DNA of 64,000 bases from Eutreptiella sp. 'Long Island Sound 2002' (lineage: Eukaryota; Protista; Euglenida). The DNA lies in the NCBI GenBank assembly GCA_964036045.1, contig OZ038379.1:26102001-26166000 (forward strand). The letters run 5' to 3'. Shown piece by piece: positions 13,696 through 39,569 of this stretch. Positions within the stretch are counted from its first letter, which is position 1. Each line of letters begins with the position of its first letter. A program made the position numbers and the translations under genes. The notes beneath the pieces are model-generated. The model was not told the DNA's origin. It searched no databases and was given only the letters and a program-made list of their open reading frames with translations.

Positions 13696-14793
13696 GGGTG
13701 CCTCGTAGGCCTGGGCAACCTGCCAGGCACCCAGCTGCTCTCCGGTGTGACGGGCCGTGTCGGAGAGGACAGCATATATAAACGGCCCTCCCCAGGCAGG
13801 GGGTGTGGGCGCCTACAACCACCTTTGCATTGGTGAGGAGGTAGAGTGGAGGCCTCCGTTGTTGTAGAGTAACCCCTTAGGCCACCGCGTCTCTGCCAAA
13901 CTGAACTAGACCTTTGCTAACCCCCTCCCCTAGCCCCCCTCCCCCCCCGGCAACTAGCAGCGACTAGCAAGTCCCTTAGAGAAGCCCTCCTCGGCGGCTA
14001 GCCCCCCCCCCCAAAAAAGCCCCCCCCCCTAGGGGCCTTCGGCCCACTTCTACTGGGGGGGGAGTCGCGTCTAAAAGCGAGGGGACGGCCCACCCGTGAG
14101 TGTGTGTAGCGCGGTGGTGTGCCGCTGCCGCATGTTCCATAAAAAAATTTTCTTTGGCCGTGAACACTGCATGTGCATGATGTTGCTGCCACCCTTGGCA
14201 CACTTTCCGGGCGGCCGCCAGGTACATTTTGGTGGCTCGTCCCATCGCCTGGTCACGTTGCCCCAACGCATATTGCAGGTATGTGCTCAATCGTGCTCCC
14301 CAATGTGTGATGAGATGACACTGTTCCAGCGACTGTGCTGCCACCAGCTGAGAATTGTGCACCATGATTGCCACCTCTGTGCAGTGTTCTAGTAGGAGGA
14401 CAGGTCGGGGGGGGGGGGGGCGTGGAGGGCAGCGGGTCGGCCGCGCGCAGGTGATCCAACAACTGTAGTTTTATGGCGTGGTCGCACACTTGGACGAGAC
14501 GGAGAATGCGTGATTTACTCGCGGCGGTCACGGGTACTTTGAGGAGCTCATTCGCATGTTTAGTCGGGCACTTTGTCTGTGGCGTGCGTACGGGCTGCCG
14601 TTTTCGCTTAGCTTGATGGTATCGGACTTGCTCGCTTAAATTCTTTTCAGTAGGATTAGGTTGGATGACCCGACCGCGGAGTTTTCCATATCACGGACTG
14701 ACTGATGTAGAGGTAGGAATGAGTTGCCCTGGGACACGTGGCGGCATGGGCAGCATGCCCCGTAGCGCCGCAACTCCCAATAGGGCATGGTAT

Positions 14794-14836
14794 TGTTTGC
14801 ACAAGCAGAGCACAAGAAAACTGCACAGGACTTGGG
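14794..14836 (-). repeat. Split direct repeat B2 (terminal)
   Basis: 43 bp identical to 15139-15181. Confidence 0.95.
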
Positions 14837-15074
14837 ATGGCAGTACTGAAGTATCACCAAGGCCGGAATACCGGCGGTTGTATGGACGGGTGCGCTGCGG
14901 ACCACTCCGCTGGATGCGGGACCCCACTCTGAAACGGACCCTGACCCTATACCCTGGTCCACACGCTGCAGCACGGTTAGATCCCCCACTCTACCCGAGG
15001 GAATCGGTTTCAAAAGGGAAAGGAAAGGGCAGGTGCTCTCAGGGGGTCAGCCGGTCAGTGGGTGGGTGGGCGGG

Positions 15075-15181
15075 CAAAGACAGGAAAACTGCCTAAACAT
15101 TGGAGACGCAAACAAAAGTTGAGACGAGGCACAACTAGTGTTTGCACAAGCAGAGCACAAGAAAACTGCACAGGACTTGGG
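15075..15181 (-). repeat. Internal B1-A2 junction (copy of the predicted circle junction)
   Basis: 15075-15140 equals 21170-21235 and 15139-15181 equals 14794-14836; the two overlap at TG. Confidence 0.95.
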
Positions 15182-16722
15182 TATTCATTCTCCGCCGTAC
15201 CCAGTTCCCACACCACAGGTCCCACATCCGGATCCCAGCTCCTGAGGAATGTGAACTGAGGTAGTAATCAAGCAAAAGGCAAAGCAACAGAAGCAACCCC
15301 CCCCCCCCACGACAACCAGGGGACCCGCCACCGTGCACTGTTGACCCGCATCTTCCCGAGACACGGCGCCGCGCTCAATGGCAGAGGCCAGAGGCTGAAG
15401 TGGAGGGAGGGCAGGATTCTTGTCTTGCACCGGGCCCAAATCAGCAACGCCACCCCCGGCGGACCCCTCCAGCGGCCGCGCCGCACGGACTGTCACCACA
15501 GTGGACAGACCCAGGTGGTCCCGGCGGTCTTCGTGCCCCACGTACAAATAAGGCGGGTAAATCGCACCAACCGGCCGTCAGCCCCAGCCGGACGCGGAGT
15601 GAGGCCGGCCCAAAAAGGTCTCCGCCATACCCAGGTATCCACCACAGGGTCCACAACCTAACCCCGGCGGACTCCTCCAGCGGCCATGCCGCCCCGGCCA
15701 GCCACCACAGCGGGGAGATACAGGCGATTACGACGGTCGCCGTGCCCTGCGGTCAAAGAGGCGGGCAAATCGCACCAACCGGCCGTCAGTCCCAGCCGGA
15801 CGCGGAGTGAGGCTGGTCCAAACAGGTGAATAAATAAAGCACCCAGCGGCCGCGCCACCAACCAAGTAAAAAGACAACACAACAGGTGCTCCCAGCGGCC
15901 ACGCCGTCGGAGTCTAGCTCTGCAGAGGGCAGACACAGGCGAACACGACTGTCGCTGAGTCTCACTGACGGTAAAAGGCGGTCAGTCCCAGCACCCGGCC
16001 GCCAGCTCCAGTGGAACGCGGACCGACGCGGCCCAGGAACACAAAACCAAATCAGCACCCAGCGGCCAAGCCGTCAGGGACACCCACTGCACTGGGCAGG
16101 CACAGACGACGACGACAGTCGTCAGACCTCACGGGTTGAAGAGGCGGGCAAATTGCAACACCAGCCCACATCGGGCCTGGATCCATATATAGGGTACAGC
16201 AACCCTGCGTCCCTGGTTCCAGTCCGTTAGGGAGACCACAGCGACTCCCTCCGGCAGCCTTATCTCCCAGACCTGGCAGCAGGCATGCCGCCCTGGGGGC
16301 TTGACGCTGCGGCCGTCGGGGGTCGTGCGGCGGTGCGGCGTGCCTCCCACGCGTGCGGCCACGTCCCGGACCGCCCGTTCCAAAAATCCCTCCCTGTCGT
16401 CAGGGAGGGGGCACTGGGGGCACAGGCGCACCCCGTTGCCGAGCAGCACCCGGCGGATGGGCAGGCATGCCAACCTGCCGCGAAGGCGGGTGCGGAGCAC
16501 GCTGCCCCACTTCGCCGCCCGGCGCGGCTGCGCGTCCGCGGATCGCTGGTGCCGCTGTCCGCCATGGCGGGCCTTCCGGTGGGCTCCACGGGAACCGCGC
16601 CGCTTGTGGGCCCCACGCGAGCCCCGACGCTTGGTCATAGGTGCGGATAGCAAAAGAAAAAAGGTTGCTACATCGAGGGCGCATACTCTGCCGCCGCTGG
16701 TCTGCTGGGGGGGGGGGGGGGG

Positions 16723-19051
16723 CTAGCATCCCCGGAGACACACCACCCCCCTCACCCGAGCCTCGCCCAGATTCTCCAGCAATGCATCCCACGTGCACCA
16801 AGCCTCGACTTCCGCTCTGGCCTGTGAGCCTCCGAACACTGACGTCACCCTGGACATAGGGTCCCCCGGCTGAAGCGCCGAGGGCACCCACACGAGGCGG
16901 AGCACGATCCCTGATACCCACAGGATTCTAGCCAACGACCGAAGGACCGTTTGGTGGTGGGTCAGGTGGCTAGTCGCGCGCAGTCTGAGGACCTGAGCAA
17001 TGGCCGCCTCACTGTCGCTACAGACCGTAACAGATCGGTGTCCCGTCCGGACTGCAAACCTGACAGCCCACGCCACTCCCCTCAGCTCCGTGGTTTGCTG
17101 GCTGGCGAAGCGGGCAGGAGGTGTCACATGCGTACGCACACCCACTCCCGGCACGAGCGCCCCAACCCTCCAACACCCCGCATCGCGCGCTCCATCGACA
17201 CAGACGACGACGCCCCCGCACCACAGAGATGATCGCGAAAGCCTATCCTCAGTCCCAAACTGGAGGGTCCTCAATTGCCGCCAGGCCTCCCCGCCCGGCG
17301 CCCGCCAGGGCTCGGCCGCCACCGCCGCCAATGTTGCAAGGCTGCCCAGCATTTTCAGGGGGAAGCCCTGGGCCGGCTGTTTGACCCCCCCCACCGTCCT
17401 ACCCCAGCGCAACCAGCAGTAGGCGCCCGCCGCGAAAGGGCAACCCAATCCCCTCGGACGCACATGCCAATTCAGCAAACCCAGGAAGCTTTGGAGGTGC
17501 TGGTCGTTGCCTGCGCCAACCGCCAGCCTCAGCCATCCCGCCCACAACTGGAGCAGAGCTTGTTCATGGCTCCTGATCTGCCTAGCCTGCAAGTCGAGCT
17601 CCTTCCCCAGGAATGACGCCACAGGCACCGGGTCCAGGACACTCTTAGGACTTATGAGGAACCCAGCCTCGATCAGGGCACGCACTGCCACTCGTCCCGC
17701 CTCCCTGAGCACCTCCCTATCAGTGAAGACGAGCAAAAAGTCATCGAGGTAGTGCACAAGGAGTATCTCGGGGGGCAGTACCCCCTGGAGAATGCGAGCC
17801 AAACTCGTTTGGCACATATGGGGGCTGTATTTCCAGCCAAACGGTAGTCGCGACAGCGCCACAGGCGGAGCCCCGGGGGCGGGCCGGAAGCGAAAAACCT
17901 GGCGCGCACCCTGGGGCAAGCAAAAGCTCCAGAACGCATTCTTGAGGTCAATGTGGAGGCCGTAGAGGTCCACATCAGGCGGGAATGTCGACAAGGACCT
18001 AGCCAAATCCTCCCAGGAATCCAATCTAAAAGTGGGGGGCTTGCCCCCGTCACTCTTGTTGATCTTGACGCAACTCAAGATCAAGGATACCTTCTCGGAT
18101 GATTTGGGGATGAGGAAGGGGTAACACGTGGGGGGGGGGGGGGTCAGCCGGCTCCTCGTAGACCCCCGCCCCCCTCAACGCCTGCACTATCCTCTGGACC
18201 TGCTGCGACACCCACCTGGTTGCCCCTCGGACCACCCTATCCCCGTCCTGCCACTCCCGCTCGACGTCAAAATCCTGGATCCCTCCGTGGTAGAAGGGCG
18301 GTACGACAGCGTCCCACAGATCGTCCGGTAGCTGGTGGGAGCCTACCGGTCCCAATCCCCGGTCCAAAATGGCATCCTCGACCCCCCCCATGAATCGCGG
18401 AATGGGGGAGGTGTTGATATGGAGGCATGCCTCCCAGGCGTCCGGGTGGAGCTTGCGCAAGGCGCCCAGGAGAGCGGGTAAAGCCCCTTGCAAGCGGAAA
18501 TCCTCGGCTGTATCGAATACTCTATTCAACCACAAATCCACCCTCTTCACAACCATCCACAAGCCACAACGTTCCCGCTCGGCTATCCAGTGAAAATGGG
18601 GGGTGAGCGCCTGCATGAACTCGAGGAAGAGGGGGGGCTTTTCCTGCACCCTCCCACCCCTGTCGGGACCCTTACAGAGGGGGGGGGGGGGACGCCACTG
18701 GGCCCGCCCTCCCCCAAGCCTTGGCCTTGAGACGCTCAGCTGCAGCCACGAAGGCACCCTCCACCGGGCCTTGCGCCTCCGGCGTCCGGACATGCCCGCC
18801 CTGCCCGAGCTTGATGCGCTTGGGCTGCGGCGTTCCGATCTGCTGGGCCAAACGAGGTCTCCCAGCTTGACGGCGTGCGGGGGCTCGGGATCGCACGGCC
18901 TGCGTACCATCCAGGACCACCTTAGCGCGACGCGGCCCCGTGTATGTGCGGCGGACACGGCCCACCACTCCAGCTTTCGAGCCCGCTGCGGGCCCTCCTC
19001 TGACAGGGCCAACGGCTGCCCTGGAGGACCACGGCTTACGCTCCCGTCCAA
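16723..19051 (-). CDS. Reverse transcriptase / RNase H of the YR retrotransposon (one frameshift in the C-run at about 18129-18143)
   Basis: Motifs CYPFLIPKSSEKVSLILSC, HIDLKNAFW, LPFGWKYSP, HYLDDFLL and FLGKELD; RNase H VDGAR, QQTTEL, SDSE and WVPSALQPGDPMSR. ORFs 18050-19051 and 16723-18084 join through the homopolymer. Confidence 0.9.
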
Positions 19052-20388
19052 CGAACCTGGCCACTCCGGCCTGTCGACGCCCGGGGGGAGCCCCTGGCGC
19101 TGCCGACTGCGAATTCACCAGAGGGCTCGCTTCCGGAATCCTCGCTGTTGTCGTCGGTGTCCACGTCGGAATCGACATTGATGGGCCCGGCTGCCGTCCC
19201 TGGCCCGCACGCCCCCCCCCCCACGGCAACCAAAGGCCCCGCCACCGTGCACAGCTGACCCGCATCTTCCCGAGACACGGCGCCGCGCTCAATGGCAGAG
19301 GCCAAAGGCTGAAGTGGAGGGAGGGTAGGAGCCGTGTCAGGCCCCGGGCCCATCTCAGCAGAGCCATCCCCGGTGGACTCCTCCAGCTCGGTCGCGGCTT
19401 GGTCTCCGTCGCCTCCGCTCCCAACTGTGCCGCTCGCGGTGGACTCCAGTTCCTGACCTCGCGGACGCCTCGGCTTGCGCTTGGTCGGGGTGCTGAGGGC
19501 GCTCGCGATACTGGGGAACATCGGGGATCCCCACAGGGCCAGGACGCCCACGCGTTCCGGAGTCGGCAAAGGCCCCTGGTCACGGGACCATGCGGGCAGC
19601 ACCGTAGGGGCAACGACTCCCGGGTCTGACCATTTGGTGCCGTATTGCATCGCCACGGCCGTGCTCTGCCATCTGCCCCACCATTTGTAGTAGGCGAGGT
19701 CTGGTTTACGGGCCCAAGTCGCTGCGGCGCCTCCCCTGCGCAGGGCGTGCCACCTGGCTCGGAAGTGGGCGGTGCTCGCCAGGGTGTCGGCCATGCCTGC
19801 CTCCAACCCCGCTTCCCCTGACTGCCAGACGAGCATGTCTGCGGACCGGCCCAGCGAAACCATGTGGCCATGAAGCCACGCCCGGACGCCGTCCGCATAC
19901 CTGTACAGGGGGCGGGTGGTGTACCCCTCCTCCCCTGTCTTGGAGTTCCAAAACTGGACAAAGCCTGGCATAGCCAGGTCAGTAACCCTGATGCCAGCTG
20001 CTTCGCCCACCCGCAGGTAGCATACCCAGCTGATGATGGCCAATGCGCTGAACACCGCTCCGTGTCTGGAGTCTCTGGCCTTTTCGACCAGCTGGACCAA
20101 GCCTGCTGGGGACAGATAGGGCTGAGAGCCCGAAGATGCGGCTCCCGCCGCAATCCGTTTGTGCAAGGTGGTGACTGTTGGGGGCAGCCATTGGAGGTCC
20201 TCCACGGCTCTGACCGCGGAGGTAATACCCCGCAGGGCCGACGCTGTAGCGCCGGCTTGCGCCCGCTCTGCCAGGAGGCCTGCCAGTGCTGCGGCTGTAT
20301 CACGCGGGCCCGTGCGGTCCGCGTAAGCCGCCAAGGCCCGGAGTCGGGACGCGGACTGCGAGCGGGTTCTCGGTCTCCAGGACTGCAT
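19036..20388 (-). CDS. Tyrosine recombinase
   Basis: Catalytic set present: R (YLRVGEA), K (NSKTG), HxxR (WHALRRGGA), W (WGRW), Y (AMQY). It ends in a low-complexity C-terminal tail. Confidence 0.9.
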   Translation of the reverse strand: MQSWRPRTRSQSASRLRALAAYADRTGPRDTAAALAGLLAERAQAGATASALRGITSAVRAVEDLQWLPPTVTTLHKRIAAGAASSGSQPYLSPAGLVQLVEKARDSRHGAVFSALAIISWVCYLRVGEAAGIRVTDLAMPGFVQFWNSKTGEEGYTTRPLYRYADGVRAWLHGHMVSLGRSADMLVWQSGEAGLEAGMADTLASTAHFRARWHALRRGGAAATWARKPDLAYYKWWGRWQSTAVAMQYGTKWSDPGVVAPTVLPAWSRDQGPLPTPERVGVLALWGSPMFPSIASALSTPTKRKPRRPRGQELESTASGTVGSGGDGDQAATELEESTGDGSAEMGPGPDTAPTLPPLQPLASAIERGAVSREDAGQLCTVAGPLVAVGGGACGPGTAAGPINVDSDVDTDDNSEDSGSEPSGEFAVGSARGSPRASTGRSGQVRWTGA

Positions 20389-20523
20389 GGCACTTTCCTC
20401 CGGTGAGCAGGGGTCGTCTGACCGGGCTGCTGTCTCCCACCGGCGGGCGAGCGCCCGCAGCTCTGCCGCCGTGTCCGCAACGCCGGAGCCCGGGGCGGCC
20501 GGTCCGGGCTCCAGCCGGTCCTG

Positions 20524-21156
20524 TCAGGACCAGTGTGGGCATCTAAAGTGCCAGTGGCATTCGTCGGGGGAGCCCCGCTGCGCGCACCTCTGGCACCCTC
20601 CGCTCGGCGGCGAGTCCACAGGGATCCACTCGCCCTGCCTCGACTGCCATTGCAGTACTCCTCCCACCTCCCTGAATTTCACGCTCCGCCACGTGAACGC
20701 CGATCCTTGTTCCTTCCATGCCTCCTCCAGCGTGGTGTACTGGTTGGACTCGGAGCTGGTTTTTCCTTGCGTCCCTGCATACCTGCGGGCATACGCCGCC
20801 TGGGACTGGGACACACAGTCCCAGACCCTCCACGCCAGCTGCTCTCCTGGGTCGACTGCGGCCTCCGTCGCCTGGCCGCCAAACTCACTTGGTCGGGGGA
20901 TCTCCCCCACCTCCCCAGCTCTAAGGCGTACGTACGCCTTGATGTTGGACAGCATGAGTCTCATCCACTGTGCCAACTGAGGCTTCTCGAGGGCTCGGTT
21001 TACTTCTGGTACGCTCAGTGGGGGCAGGCGGGGCCCCTCCTTCACTGCCACTCGGGCGAGTTGCTCTCTGAGTTCTTGAATTTCTTTGGCTTGTGCCGCC
21101 AGCCGCTCCTCGGCTGACTCTTGCTGGTTCTGACTAGGCTGCTCAACCCCGTCCAT
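20524..21156 (-). CDS. Gag-like protein of the YR retrotransposon
   Basis: First ORF after repeat A1, with an N-terminal coiled-coil-like segment and a C-terminal PP..C-x2-C...HW..C zinc-knuckle-like motif. Confidence 0.7.
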   Translation of the reverse strand: MDGVEQPSQNQQESAEERLAAQAKEIQELREQLARVAVKEGPRLPPLSVPEVNRALEKPQLAQWMRLMLSNIKAYVRLRAGEVGEIPRPSEFGGQATEAAVDPGEQLAWRVWDCVSQSQAAYARRYAGTQGKTSSESNQYTTLEEAWKEQGSAFTWRSVKFREVGGVLQWQSRQGEWIPVDSPPSGGCQRCAQRGSPDECHWHFRCPHWS

Positions 21157-21169
21157 GGGTCAACAAAAA

Positions 21170-21235
21170 CAAAGACAGGAAAACTGCCTAAACATTGGAG
21201 ACGCAAACAAAAGTTGAGACGAGGCACAACTAGTG
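21170..21235 (-). repeat. Split direct repeat A1 (terminal)
   Basis: 66 bp identical to 15075-15140. Confidence 0.95.
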
Positions 21236-22194
21236 AAACCATGCCACCCGATACCGGATGTTCGCCATAGCCTTGAGGGGGATTGTGTCAATGAAGGTGC
21301 TAGGGATGCGGAGACAGGATATCTGCTTGAGGTCGTTGGTTGTCGCTGTAAGGAGCCAGTCGTGGGCCTGTTGGTGCCACTCGCCCCAAGAGTGGGTCCA
21401 TAGATTGATGAAAGAGGGCCGCCATCGAGGGCAAGAAACGAGGCGCCGATGTGCAGTGGTGCCGTGGTGCTGCCCACATAGCTGGCACTTTAGAACTTGC
21501 CTTTCCCATGGTGCGCCACAGGCTTCCCATCGCACGCTGCCCCAGAGCCAAGGGTGCCTAAGGCGTCGGCGCTTGCCCTTCAGAGGTAACCAGGTTGTCC
21601 AATGTGCCCCGCGGAACCCAAGGATACTCCGACAGTCCAGGATCCATTTGTGTGCAGGGGTAGGCGCATGCCCCCCCCCAATAACGACGTGACTGACATC
21701 AGTGGGGTCAACATCTGGGAGTGGAAGACCTGCTGCTTTTTTGGCCCATCTGTCAACTTCGTTGTTGTGCCGGATGTCCTCTCGGTCCTGCTTGGTACAC
21801 GCCTGAGTGAGTTCCCGGTGCCCTGGTATCCACCGCACGGGGATCGGATTGCCTTGTGTGTGGTTGTAGATAAAGTCCCGGAGATCGCGGTCTGCACATT
21901 CCCGGTGTGGCTCCGTTTGACACCACCGCACAATGCCTGGTTGTCAAGCGTAAGCGTGTCATCTGCACCTCGTAATTGGGTGAGCATTGCTGGTGGCTGG
22001 AGCTCGGCCCTGTACCGGTAGGACGTTTGTGGTCCCGTAATGCGGGCAATGACAATGAGTGGGCCGCAAATCAGAGAACAGCCTGCTCGGGAGTGATCAC
22101 CGTGATCAGCGTGGCTGATGAGTTTGCTACCATCGCTGTGCCACTCGTTGCCACTGCGGGCTTTGTTGTTGGCGTACGCCTCATGGCCCGCTAT

Positions 22195-22893
22195 GGGGGA
22201 ATCTTTGCACTGCACGTGCACTGCGCGCTACTTTTAGACTATGTTCCCCCCGAAGAGCCCCCAAGCAAACCCCTTGGAAATGCCCTTAGAATTAGGTGAC
22301 CCAAACTACCCCGGCTCAAGAAAGTTGCAAACTACCTTCCCTTCACATAACACACATCATGCACAACTGGAAAAGCCATGAACAGCGCGTTGGTCGCCAC
22401 CCTCAAGAATACAGAACTGTCTTTCTGTTCCATTGTCTACTAAGTACACATGGACTCCATCTTGCATTGGCGATTTACCACCCGTAGTGCATCTTGGTAG
22501 TACTCCAAGTGGATGAGCCCATCTCCCGCCATCCCAACCACCGTGGCAGGAACTCGCACGCTGTTGGAGCGGGTGTAGAACACCCGATCGCCAAGACTCA
22601 AATCCATGAAGAAAGTGTTTCTAAGAAAGGAGGAGGGGGGTATGAAGTCGTGTAGCATATGTGCAAGCACGATAGATCAATGTGTGCACACGAGCATTGC
22701 GCCTTGCCATGCCTTGACACAACCATGCTACGCCTTGCCATGCCTTGACCCAAACGTGCTACACCTTGCAAAACCTCCGCTAGGGGTCACCATGATGCCC
22801 CTAGGGGCCCCTAGTATCTCAAAGTGTGGGTCTCTAGTACGGCCAGACACCCAAATAGTTGCACTGCGCGCGCACTGCGCTTGAGGCTCCCCC
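22195..22893 (-). mobile_element. Harbinger-type deletion derivative (E3), TSD TAT, carrying a Tudor/SH3-like coding remnant
   Basis: TAT|GGGGGA ... TCCCCC|TAT. The segment MDLSLGDRVFYTRSNSVRVPATVVG (ATG at 22607) is homologous to the transposase N-terminus at 26479. Excision restores the LINE frame. Confidence 0.85.
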
Positions 22894-23829: not shown

Positions 23830-26479
23830 TCAACCCCTCCAACTGTCATTTGTGTTGCACTTAACAAACAACATTGGTCCCACAAGTGTGGGTGTCAATA
23901 CATTCATTACAATAATGCTCCTTGCACTCATCACAAACTGCGACGGTGGAGCGTTCTGGCAACACAAAACACACACTTCCGCCTCATCCTCTGCCTCATC
24001 TTGCGTGGCGGCCGAGTTGCTTTGGTCAGTCCAAACCTGAGGCGGGACATGCTCCCATGGTCCGTAGGGGGGGTGACGGACTTGCCTCCGGATGCAAAAC
24101 TGAGTGAAATGCAACAAAATGCGGACTGACTGGTGCAACTCATTGGGGCCGCCACGCCAGATGTTCCTAACCAAATCCCAATGCCACAACCGAGCAAACA
24201 GCTGCTCAATGCGTGCCCTGTACCACCCATGGACATCATTGTAACCTTGTTGGCGGGCTGTCATTGTGCCATTCTTTCTTCCAATGAATGGCACAATGAC
24301 ATGAATCCGGCCTTTATAAGCGCCATCATGGCCCCCAACTTCAAAATCAAAGAAATCCCCTCGGGTACGAGAAGGTCCGTACCCATCCCAAATCAAAACA
24401 TCTGCTGATGTCCCGGGGGCCAAGGGGCAAATCCATACAATGTTGCCCAACATATCAACGGCAACAGTGACCTTGTAAACATGCGACGCATACTTAGGAT
24501 TCCACATGTCTGCACTCCATATCCCGCCAATGGAACTGATGGGCATGGAGTCTGTGAAATGCGTCATAAAGAATGGAAAATGGGGACAATGGTTGAAAGG
24601 ATTCAACCTGTCGGCCCATCGAATCTCTTGAACAACATGGTTAAGGTATTCGCGAGCACGGGCAACACTCTGCCGCCAGGCAACCTCCGAACCTTCTGCG
24701 TGAGACATGAAAGCACCGCTCTGTGCCGGTGGGGTGTGCTTCATCCAGAAAAAAAATTGAAACAATGACTCACGGTCGAGGAGCTCGTGGTGCCCGTACT
24801 TCATCCAAAATTCCTCCATTGTTTCGGCATCTGCACCCATCCGTGCAACTTGGGTACACACACAGGTGGACTTACACCGTTTCACCCACCATTGGACACC
24901 ACCACCCTTGCCATCGTCGTAGACGGGGTGCAAAGGGTGTGCCAAGTTCTTAGACACGGCGAGGAGATATTCCAAAATCTCATCCTCTGTCTTTTTGTTC
25001 TCCCTCGCAACCTCTTCCGCTGTGTACTCTCTTTCCGTGGAGGGTTCGACAGGGTTGGGCTGGGGCTTGGGTTTGCCTTTCGCGGACTTAGATTTGCGTT
25101 GAGGTTTGGGTTGGGGTTTGGGTTCAGGGTTGGGTTGAGGTTTGGGTTCAGGTTTGGGTTGAGGTTTGGGTTGAGGTTTGGGTTGAGGTTTGGGTTGAGG
25201 TTTGGGCTGGGCATAAAAAGCGGCAGGGGCCACAGTTCCCCCCTCCAGATGCTCCGTGTCCTTTGGTAGGTGGTGGCCTTTGCCAAAGGTGAGGATTTGT
25301 TGGACTATCTTAGGCACGGCAATGTCCTGTTCTATATAGTGGGGATGCTCCTTCGCCCAAAAATCAATGTGCGCTGTTCGAAACCGGCGCATGAAAATAG
25401 TGCGTTCCAGGGGCCCACATTTTTCCAGGGTCAGTTGGTTAGGTGTTGCAGACTTCGGGAACCGTTCCTTTAGTTGATCCAAAAAAGCAGTTTCCCGGCG
25501 ATGCAAGTCACCAATCTTCTTCTGGATGTGGTCCATGTACTGCAAAACCGGCGTGGCATGTAGGGTACCACTGCCGGCGGGGATCTTCGCCTGCCGCACG
25601 CGATGAGACCCGCCCGCCTTGAACGCTCCCTTGGACTGCTTCAGCTTCGTGTCCGCGAGAACTTGAAACCGGCGGCGGTATGCGACCCAATGCTGGTGGC
25701 GATTTGTTGCTATCCCAAAGCGGGGGAGGAAGCGGCTGGCCGCATTGTTAAATGGCCTGTGACAGACAGACACACACAACATATATGCATTGCATAGTAA
25801 TTGGGAAGACGGACACGATATATCCGACAGCCGTGACATCATCATGGAGCGTGAGGGCTGGCGAATACCTGCGACCCGTTGAAGGGGTGTTGTCTTCCAG
25901 CCATGCGCAGACTTCAGCCCATTGCTCGTTTGATAATTGCACGGGTAAAGTCTTCGCCAGCTGGCGAATTTCTTTATCACGCGCACGAGCCTTTGCTGAT
26001 GTTTGCGATTCACGCCTTCCTCGCCGTACCTCTTGGTCTTCATCATCCGAAAGTAGCCCAGGGGGCGCCGGAGAGGCGGAGCGCGATGGGGCATGGCTGC
26101 GTGATGGGGACCGCGATGATGTTCGTAGCGGGGAGCGGCCACGGAGAGGGGTGCCACCACTCGTGTCATCAAGGATGTCGGCGGCCGGTGGACTTGAGGG
26201 GGGTGGTGTGGGTGAACGGCCACGGAGATAGCTACCACCAGTCGCATCACCGGGGACGTCGGCGGCTGGTGGACTTGAGGGGGTTGGTGGGGGTGAGTCC
26301 CAACTCGGGATACCGAAGGAGAGGGCGTCGATGGGGCAATGATGGTTGATGACGCGCACCCCATCTTGCAGGTACTCCAACTCCACGTACCCTTCGTCCG
26401 TATGGCCAGCTACCTTCGCAGGTACGCGAAGCCCAGTCGACCGAGTGTAAAAGACGCTGTCCCCAATCTTCAAATCCAT
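23830..26479 (-). CDS. DDE transposase (DDE_Tnp_4 / Harbinger type) with N-terminal Tudor/SH3-like domain; 2 exons (26479-25869, 25756-23830), 845 aa
   Basis: A phase-2 GT-AG intron at 25868-25757 joins ORF 25748-26491 to ORF 23830-26364 in frame (611+1927 nt = 846 codons including the stop). Catalytic motifs FTDSMP, HDGAYKG and [11 protein letters not shown]; a (KPQP)n linker. Confidence 0.85.
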
Positions 26480-39011: not shown

Positions 39012-39569
39012 CGCGCGAAATGGGCAAAAATCACAGCTCCGTTGTGGTGCTTCGGATTCAGCCAAAATTTTGGTGGATGGTACCTATGGGTGTGAGGGAC
39101 AACCACACAAAGTATAAGCCAGAAACTCAACAGTGGCGGCCGGGAACGGGCGTCGCAAGTACCAGACCTCCATTTCAAAATCTGCAATTTAGGGCCAAAA
39201 TCAGCCTTTTTTTGCCCAAAAGCGCCCTAGAACCTGCTGAAAGCGGCCAAATGAAGGGAAATAGTGGCTACTCCACACATGCAGCTAGACTTCCTTGTGC
39301 CGAAGGGCTCTTTAGGGCCCTCAAACTCCACACTATGTCCACGAACCGCCCCCACAAGGCCCCCGAAAGCCCAAGAATTTGTGCACATTGGCCGCTGACA
39401 GCCCCAAACCAAAAGCAGACCATATCTTGGGCTACGTGGCTCAAAACGCGATTTGGAGCGCACCTAATCCACCCGCAACCACCCACTTTTGGTGGTTTCC
39501 AGCCCTCAAAATTGCCCTAACCGACGCCTAGACCCCTGTACCTAGGCCCAGTGGGCTGCGGCAAGCTGC

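Follow-up and report, generated by a model that had tools for sequence, protein, structure and literature searches.

Does the recombinase of a retrotransposon choose its target by the symmetry of the DNA or by a few bases at the point of crossover? The question is raised by a 6.4-kb tyrosine-recombinase (YR) retrotransposon at positions 14794-21235 of the stretch analysed here, 64,000 nucleotides (nt) of contig OZ038379.1 of Eutreptiella sp. 'Long Island Sound 2002' (hereafter the window), with its coding sequence on the minus strand. The element interrupts a palindrome, and an earlier interpretation made from the letters alone (the sequence-only reading) had proposed that it may recognise a bacterial-style attachment (att) site or a cruciform and not merely a short core. 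The palindromic observation was confirmed, and its att-like interpretation is partly supported: recognition of an att-like palindrome is neither a requirement nor the usual mode of integration in this family.

The element lies within a 1.65-kb host repeat. Its joined flanks aligned with nine uninterrupted paralogues at 81-93% identity over 300-1670 nt, and comparison of the insertion site with these empty copies revealed no base gained or lost, i.e. no target-site duplication (TSD). This colinear alignment therefore gives both the element's boundaries and the lack of a TSD directly. When the flanks are joined, two 8-nt arms in inverted orientation enclose a 6-nt spacer, whose exact centre holds the TG of the junction and thus the crossover (coordinates in Table 1). 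All 8 arm positions are mirrored, as was the case for 0.011% of the 18,183 TG sites in the DNA analysed. Taken as a single site, the perfect palindrome is well beyond chance. The paralogues score mostly 6 of 8, and one of them (L039), which agrees with the window in its left arm, scores 7 of 8; all of them are empty. The palindrome is hence a property of the host repeat, which predates the insertion and was not created by the element. Up to this point the sequence-only reading, which had described an insertion at the centre of a perfect palindrome without a TSD, was borne out.

The other partner of the reaction would be the junction of the joined element ends, of which the element carries an internal copy. 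As had been remarked before, this junction is not palindromic. Three direct copies of GCACAA surround it (at 15129, 15144 and 15155), and the only palindrome found there is the 6-bp ACTAGT at 15134-15139, which lies beside the crossover and is off-centre. The partner site of the element thus has no inverted arms, and no identical overlap of 6-8 bp is present in both partners; TG is common to them at this locus.

Whether the symmetry seen in the window recurs was assessed at 16 further sites of the family, obtained by three routes. For eight sites, the real right flank was combined with a paralogous empty copy; for seven copies, the genome was searched for a left junction as predicted from a palindrome, with a minimum of 6 mirrored bases out of 9; and the last one, L050, is itself a paralogue of the host repeat in the window. 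No mirror symmetry was present at 14 of the 16 sites; symmetry was moderate at one (L006, rebuilt, arm score 5 of 8) and strong at one (L008). Arm scores of 0-3 of 8 were obtained for the rebuilt sites of L002/L027, L007, L009, L013, L022 and L030. Across the six proxy-rebuilt sites that remain when L008 and L002/L027 are left out, mirrored matches were at the chance level of 25%, and shifting the centre by up to 5 nt gave nothing above background at the other sites. The palindrome-predicted left junction was not found at the expected place for L005, L010, L011, L012, L014, L017 and L019. The internal junctions of L005, L010, L017 and L019 were present at the expected places, so that these copies are complete on that side, and for L010 the real left flank was recovered and is not symmetric. 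L050 has its palindromic site empty and carries a copy of the element at a distance of 590 nt, where symmetry is lacking.

Because 14 of the 16 other sites lack such symmetry, a palindrome cannot be a requirement of the enzyme. As a rule, att-like or cruciform recognition instead of a short core finds no support in this comparison, nor in the at least nine paralogous copies of the window palindrome that are empty. The inverted arms whose enrichment had been suggested as a check were absent from most sites of this small sample, whereas one further perfect palindrome centred on the crossover, that of L008, would be compatible with a mild preference.

Some observations on individual sites may be added. 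The window contains, at 22369-22370 and 39093-39094, empty paralogues of the insertion places of L009 and L007, respectively, both of them non-symmetric. A separate perfect inverted repeat of 10 nt (proxy L013, about 2570-2600) lies 4 nt to the left of the insertion point of L022; with a shift of one, 7 of 8 bases in one of its arms are those of the left arm of the window. This insertion is beside a palindrome and not at its centre. On contig C5, at about 131463974, a copy has a left flank that agrees at 8 of 9 bases with the right flank of L011 in reverse complement. L011 itself is on C25, no right junction with an L011-like flank was found on C5, and the match may be due to chance (roughly 3% per search).

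The bases at the crossover give a different picture of the target. In the window, TG is found at both ends of the element and at the internal junction, as the sequence-only reading had stated, but as a common core it does not hold family-wide, since the left junction is GG in 57 copies; GG is also what L008 and L010 have there. The empty paralogue of L008 likewise has GG, and the first base of the left junction is therefore contributed by the target. Throughout the family, element and target share the G alone, and TG is not constant. Of 28 copies, 27 have A or T at position +3 of the right flank and 22 at position +4. A conserved right arm was rejected, the right flanks of these 28 copies having only an A/T-rich triplet in common.

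Certain places in host repeats were used more than once. L002 and L027 end at the same host position (locus position 1636 in both); their flanks are 90% alike, their element parts 96.5%. In another host family, three left junctions with one common flank (on C4, C5 and C8) fall at the same position. Neither place is palindromic. These repeated independent hits at non-symmetric places indicate that the enzyme has some sequence taste other than the palindrome. Of the element, L002 has just the final 145 nt (L002:1492-1636); it is a truncated copy or a fragment with the same end position as the full L027 copy. In L018, a third copy of this host family, the insertion lies 17 nt away.

We consider it probable that the element is of the VIPER type, integrates without a TSD at a short core and does not need the palindrome. 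Its cDNA would be circularised with the B2 and A1 ends abutting, as they do in the internal B1/A2 copy, a step suggested by the split repeats. The recombinase then crosses the circle junction with the host sequence; as the empty paralogues show, this happens at a very short core and without a duplication. The target would have to provide only a G, often with T or G before it and an A/T-rich triplet after it, and a local sequence taste would favour certain host-repeat places over others. The palindrome in the window, a feature of the host repeat, was unneeded for integration and would be a coincidence or at most a facilitating circumstance.

Several points weigh against this short-core reading. 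The number of sites is small, the left flanks mostly had to be deduced from paralogues (71-96% identity; 96.3% for L027 and L018), and the ranking of the 30 copies was somewhat biased toward the right flank of the window. When the discovery site is included, 2 of 17 sites are perfect palindromes with 7-8-nt arms centred on the crossover, compared to a background of 0.09%. Finally, CCAT is found three bases to the right of the core (+5 to +8) 6 times, versus 1 for the non-inverted control, and ATGG is found 5 times at the mirrored place on the left (-7 to -4). About 1.2 occurrences of each were expected, a figure derived from roughly 300 copies, and the orientation control concerns the right side only.

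The second palindromic site, L008 on contig C25, consists of a perfect mirrored run of 7 on either side of a 4-nt spacer, with the crossover at its centre. Its predicted left junction is present on C25 in real sequence with a single mismatch, GG for TG. Mirrored runs of at least 7 centred on TG account for 0.088% of background sites, which gives a probability of about 0.014 for at least one in 16. Such a site would be expected if the recombinase had a non-obligatory preference for symmetric or cruciform-prone DNA, a dimer on inverted arms or an extruded hairpin making a site many times likelier to be used, and the joined site of the window can fold into a hairpin with 8 bp in the stem and 6 nt in the loop (-7.5 kcal/mol, DNA parameters). 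We nevertheless regard this preference as rather unlikely. The run measure was picked post hoc, after the L008 site was known; in the register of the sequence-only reading (8-nt arms, 6-nt spacer) L008 scores 6 of 8, against a background of 0.74%, and the probability of at least one in 16 rises to about 0.11. The remaining sites show no graded symmetry, and neither the sequence of the arms nor the length of the spacer is the same in the two palindromes. In addition, among 779 candidates for the 121-nt stretch around the L008 site, at least 36 are identical and empty; the C25 locus is the only filled one. A stronger form, in which the recombinase integrates about hundred-fold more readily per site (a rough estimate) at the centres of perfect short palindromes of any sequence and uses short-core sites as a low-efficiency fallback, appears unlikely to us; if true, symmetry of the DNA or a cruciform would guide the integration of a eukaryotic retroelement.

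At the L008 locus itself, two identical left junctions were found on C25, at about 24891731 and 24894726 (2,995 bp apart), and both lie upstream of one and the same right end. The arrangement points to a partial duplication taking in the host flank and the left part of the element.

The CCAT and ATGG counts could instead reflect sequence-specific half-sites, each recombinase monomer preferring an inverted ATGG three bases from the core; the window would then have both half-sites, and most other sites one or none. The excess over expectation and over the right-hand control is what such half-sites would produce, but they would cover only about 3% of copies, 3 of the 5 left matches and 2 of the 6 right matches each fall within one host repeat family, and the second palindrome lacks the motif at that spacing. 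The excess is small and partly due to repeated hits in one host family, and half-sites of this kind seem to us very improbable. Two related candidates were discarded: the CCAT excess in a first list was an artefact of ranking the copies by similarity to the right flank of the window itself, and a general left ATGG motif, suggested by the paralogue proxies, was rejected with only 5 copies genome-wide at that spacing.

The present evidence thus supports mainly the usual picture, TSD-free insertion at a core of one base, for which a palindrome is not required. Were a symmetry preference to be proven, it would tie the integration chemistry of these elements to bacterial site-specific recombination and suggest an engineerable target rule. 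As a young, high-copy family, the element is well suited to deciding the symmetry question by a census.

The ends of the element are organised as split direct repeats (A1 ... B1 A2 ... B2), and the internal B1/A2 copy equals the sequence of the joined element ends; 238 nt separate the internal junction from the outer repeat. Genome-wide, at least 940 right ends were seen at a first look, with 570 exact right-end words and about 262 exact internal junctions. The family comprises roughly 300 well-kept copies of 96-99% identity in a genome of 2.28 Gb and is young, high-copy and well defined.

On the minus strand, the frames follow in the order gag-like (21156-20524), recombinase (20388-19036), and an overlapping frame together with reverse transcriptase (RT)/RNase H (19051-16723). 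In an alignment of the 450-aa frame with 12 homologues, down to 26% identity, residues R126, K150, H214, R217 and W240 are fully conserved and Y249 almost fully. These residues constitute the catalytic set of tyrosine recombinases, and the frame was read as the recombinase. Direct Pfam and PDB searches with this frame gave no match. With a profile, the top PDB rows were XerA and XerD, only at E about 1; Phage_int_SAM_1 was matched by 4 of 13 recombinase sequences (best E 9e-4), and the nearest named Atlas clusters bear Phage_integrase. The AlphaFold model of the recombinase, with a mean pLDDT (predicted local distance difference test) of 34, was too poor for use. The original assignment to the YR retrotransposons is supported. 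An RT domain, these catalytic residues, TSD-free insertion and an internal repeat copy equal to the joined ends are features of the DIRS order that the element shows, and the recombinase gene precedes RT/RNase H, as in VIPER-type elements. By its gene order and split repeats, we take the element to be a VIPER-type YR retrotransposon. For a reading frame of the host repeat, an assignment by eye to RNase H was dropped, the frame having no Pfam match.

Table 1. Positions in the window of the element, its repeats and frames, the interrupted host repeat and the empty counterparts of other insertion sites
Feature	Position	Strand	Remarks
Left part of interrupted host repeat	14100-14793		joined flanks colinear with 9 paralogues, 81-93%
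Left 8-nt palindrome arm, host DNA	14784-14791	+	most paralogues differ at 2 of 8 positions
6-nt spacer of the palindrome	14792-14795 and 21236-21237		TG at its centre
TG, left junction	14794-14795	+	T from target; only G common to all copies
Terminal repeat A1	14796-14838	+	equals A2 at 15141-15183, about 43 nt
Internal repeat B1	15073-15140	+	100% identical to B2 over 68 nt; with A2 mimics a circle junction
TG, internal junction	15139-15140		
Internal repeat A2	15141-15183	+	abuts B1 at 15140/15141
RT/RNase H frame	16723-18084	-	Pfam RVT_1, E 3.6e-12; RVT_3 (RNase H-like) weak
Frame just upstream of RT frame	18050-19051	-	overlaps RT and recombinase frames; no family match
Tyrosine recombinase frame	19036-20388	-	450 aa; catalytic-residue conservation
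First, gag-like frame	20524-21156	-	210 aa; coiled-coil hints only
Terminal repeat B2	21168-21235	+	TG at its end
TG, right end	21234-21235		
Right part of interrupted host repeat	21236-22195		joined flanks colinear with paralogues
Right 8-nt palindrome arm, host DNA	21238-21245	+	perfect reverse complement of left arm
Empty counterpart of L050 insertion place	21824-21825	+	score 2 of 8, not symmetric
Empty paralogue of second palindromic site	24591-24608	+	7-nt perfect arms, 4-nt spacer; site used by C25 copy

Comparison with known systems places these features in context. VIPER elements encode a gag-like protein, a tyrosine recombinase and RT/RNase H between split direct repeats of the A1 ... 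B1 A2 ... B2 type (PMC6681497). The element in the window, likened by its layout to VIPER (and TATE) of kinetoplastids, has the same gene order and split direct repeats; it differs from them in the 238-nt distance given above and in the 2.28-Gb genome in which it resides. With the Ngaro and PAT-like elements of the DIRS order it shares split direct repeats that mimic a circle junction and integration without a TSD. In those elements the recombinase follows RT/RNase H, whereas here it precedes them. The likeness to the lambda att core, loxP and dif, i.e. inverted arms, a 6-nt spacer and a crossover inside that spacer, is confined to the site in the window. Unlike in those systems, the arms are absent from 14 of the 16 other sites and from the junction of the element, and the partners share one base and not an overlap of 6-8 bp. 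Integrases of the Tn916 and CTnDOT type, which belong to bacterial DNA elements, join partners with little or no overlap identity, so that the junctions differ between the two ends. A comparable feature may be seen in L008 and L010, where the left end is GG and the right end TG. To our knowledge, very little is known about the target choice of YR retrotransposons. A full-text literature search revealed no paper in which such elements are connected with palindromic targets. In the text of the VIPER/TATE study (PMC6681497), which does not address target choice, the terms 'target site', 'insertion site' and 'palindrom' are absent.

Finally, an Rfam scan of the whole window gave no match, and some repeats were noted in and near the element. 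Three degenerate direct repeats of ~210 nt each, 62-93% alike, occupy the non-coding part from the RT frame to the internal junction (15543-16170), without a report by Tandem Repeats Finder. Runs of G or C, 11-16 long, are present within the element and just to its left (14398-14420, 15296-15308, 16699-16721, 18122-18144 and 19210-19222), and they form imperfect inverted repeats with each other.

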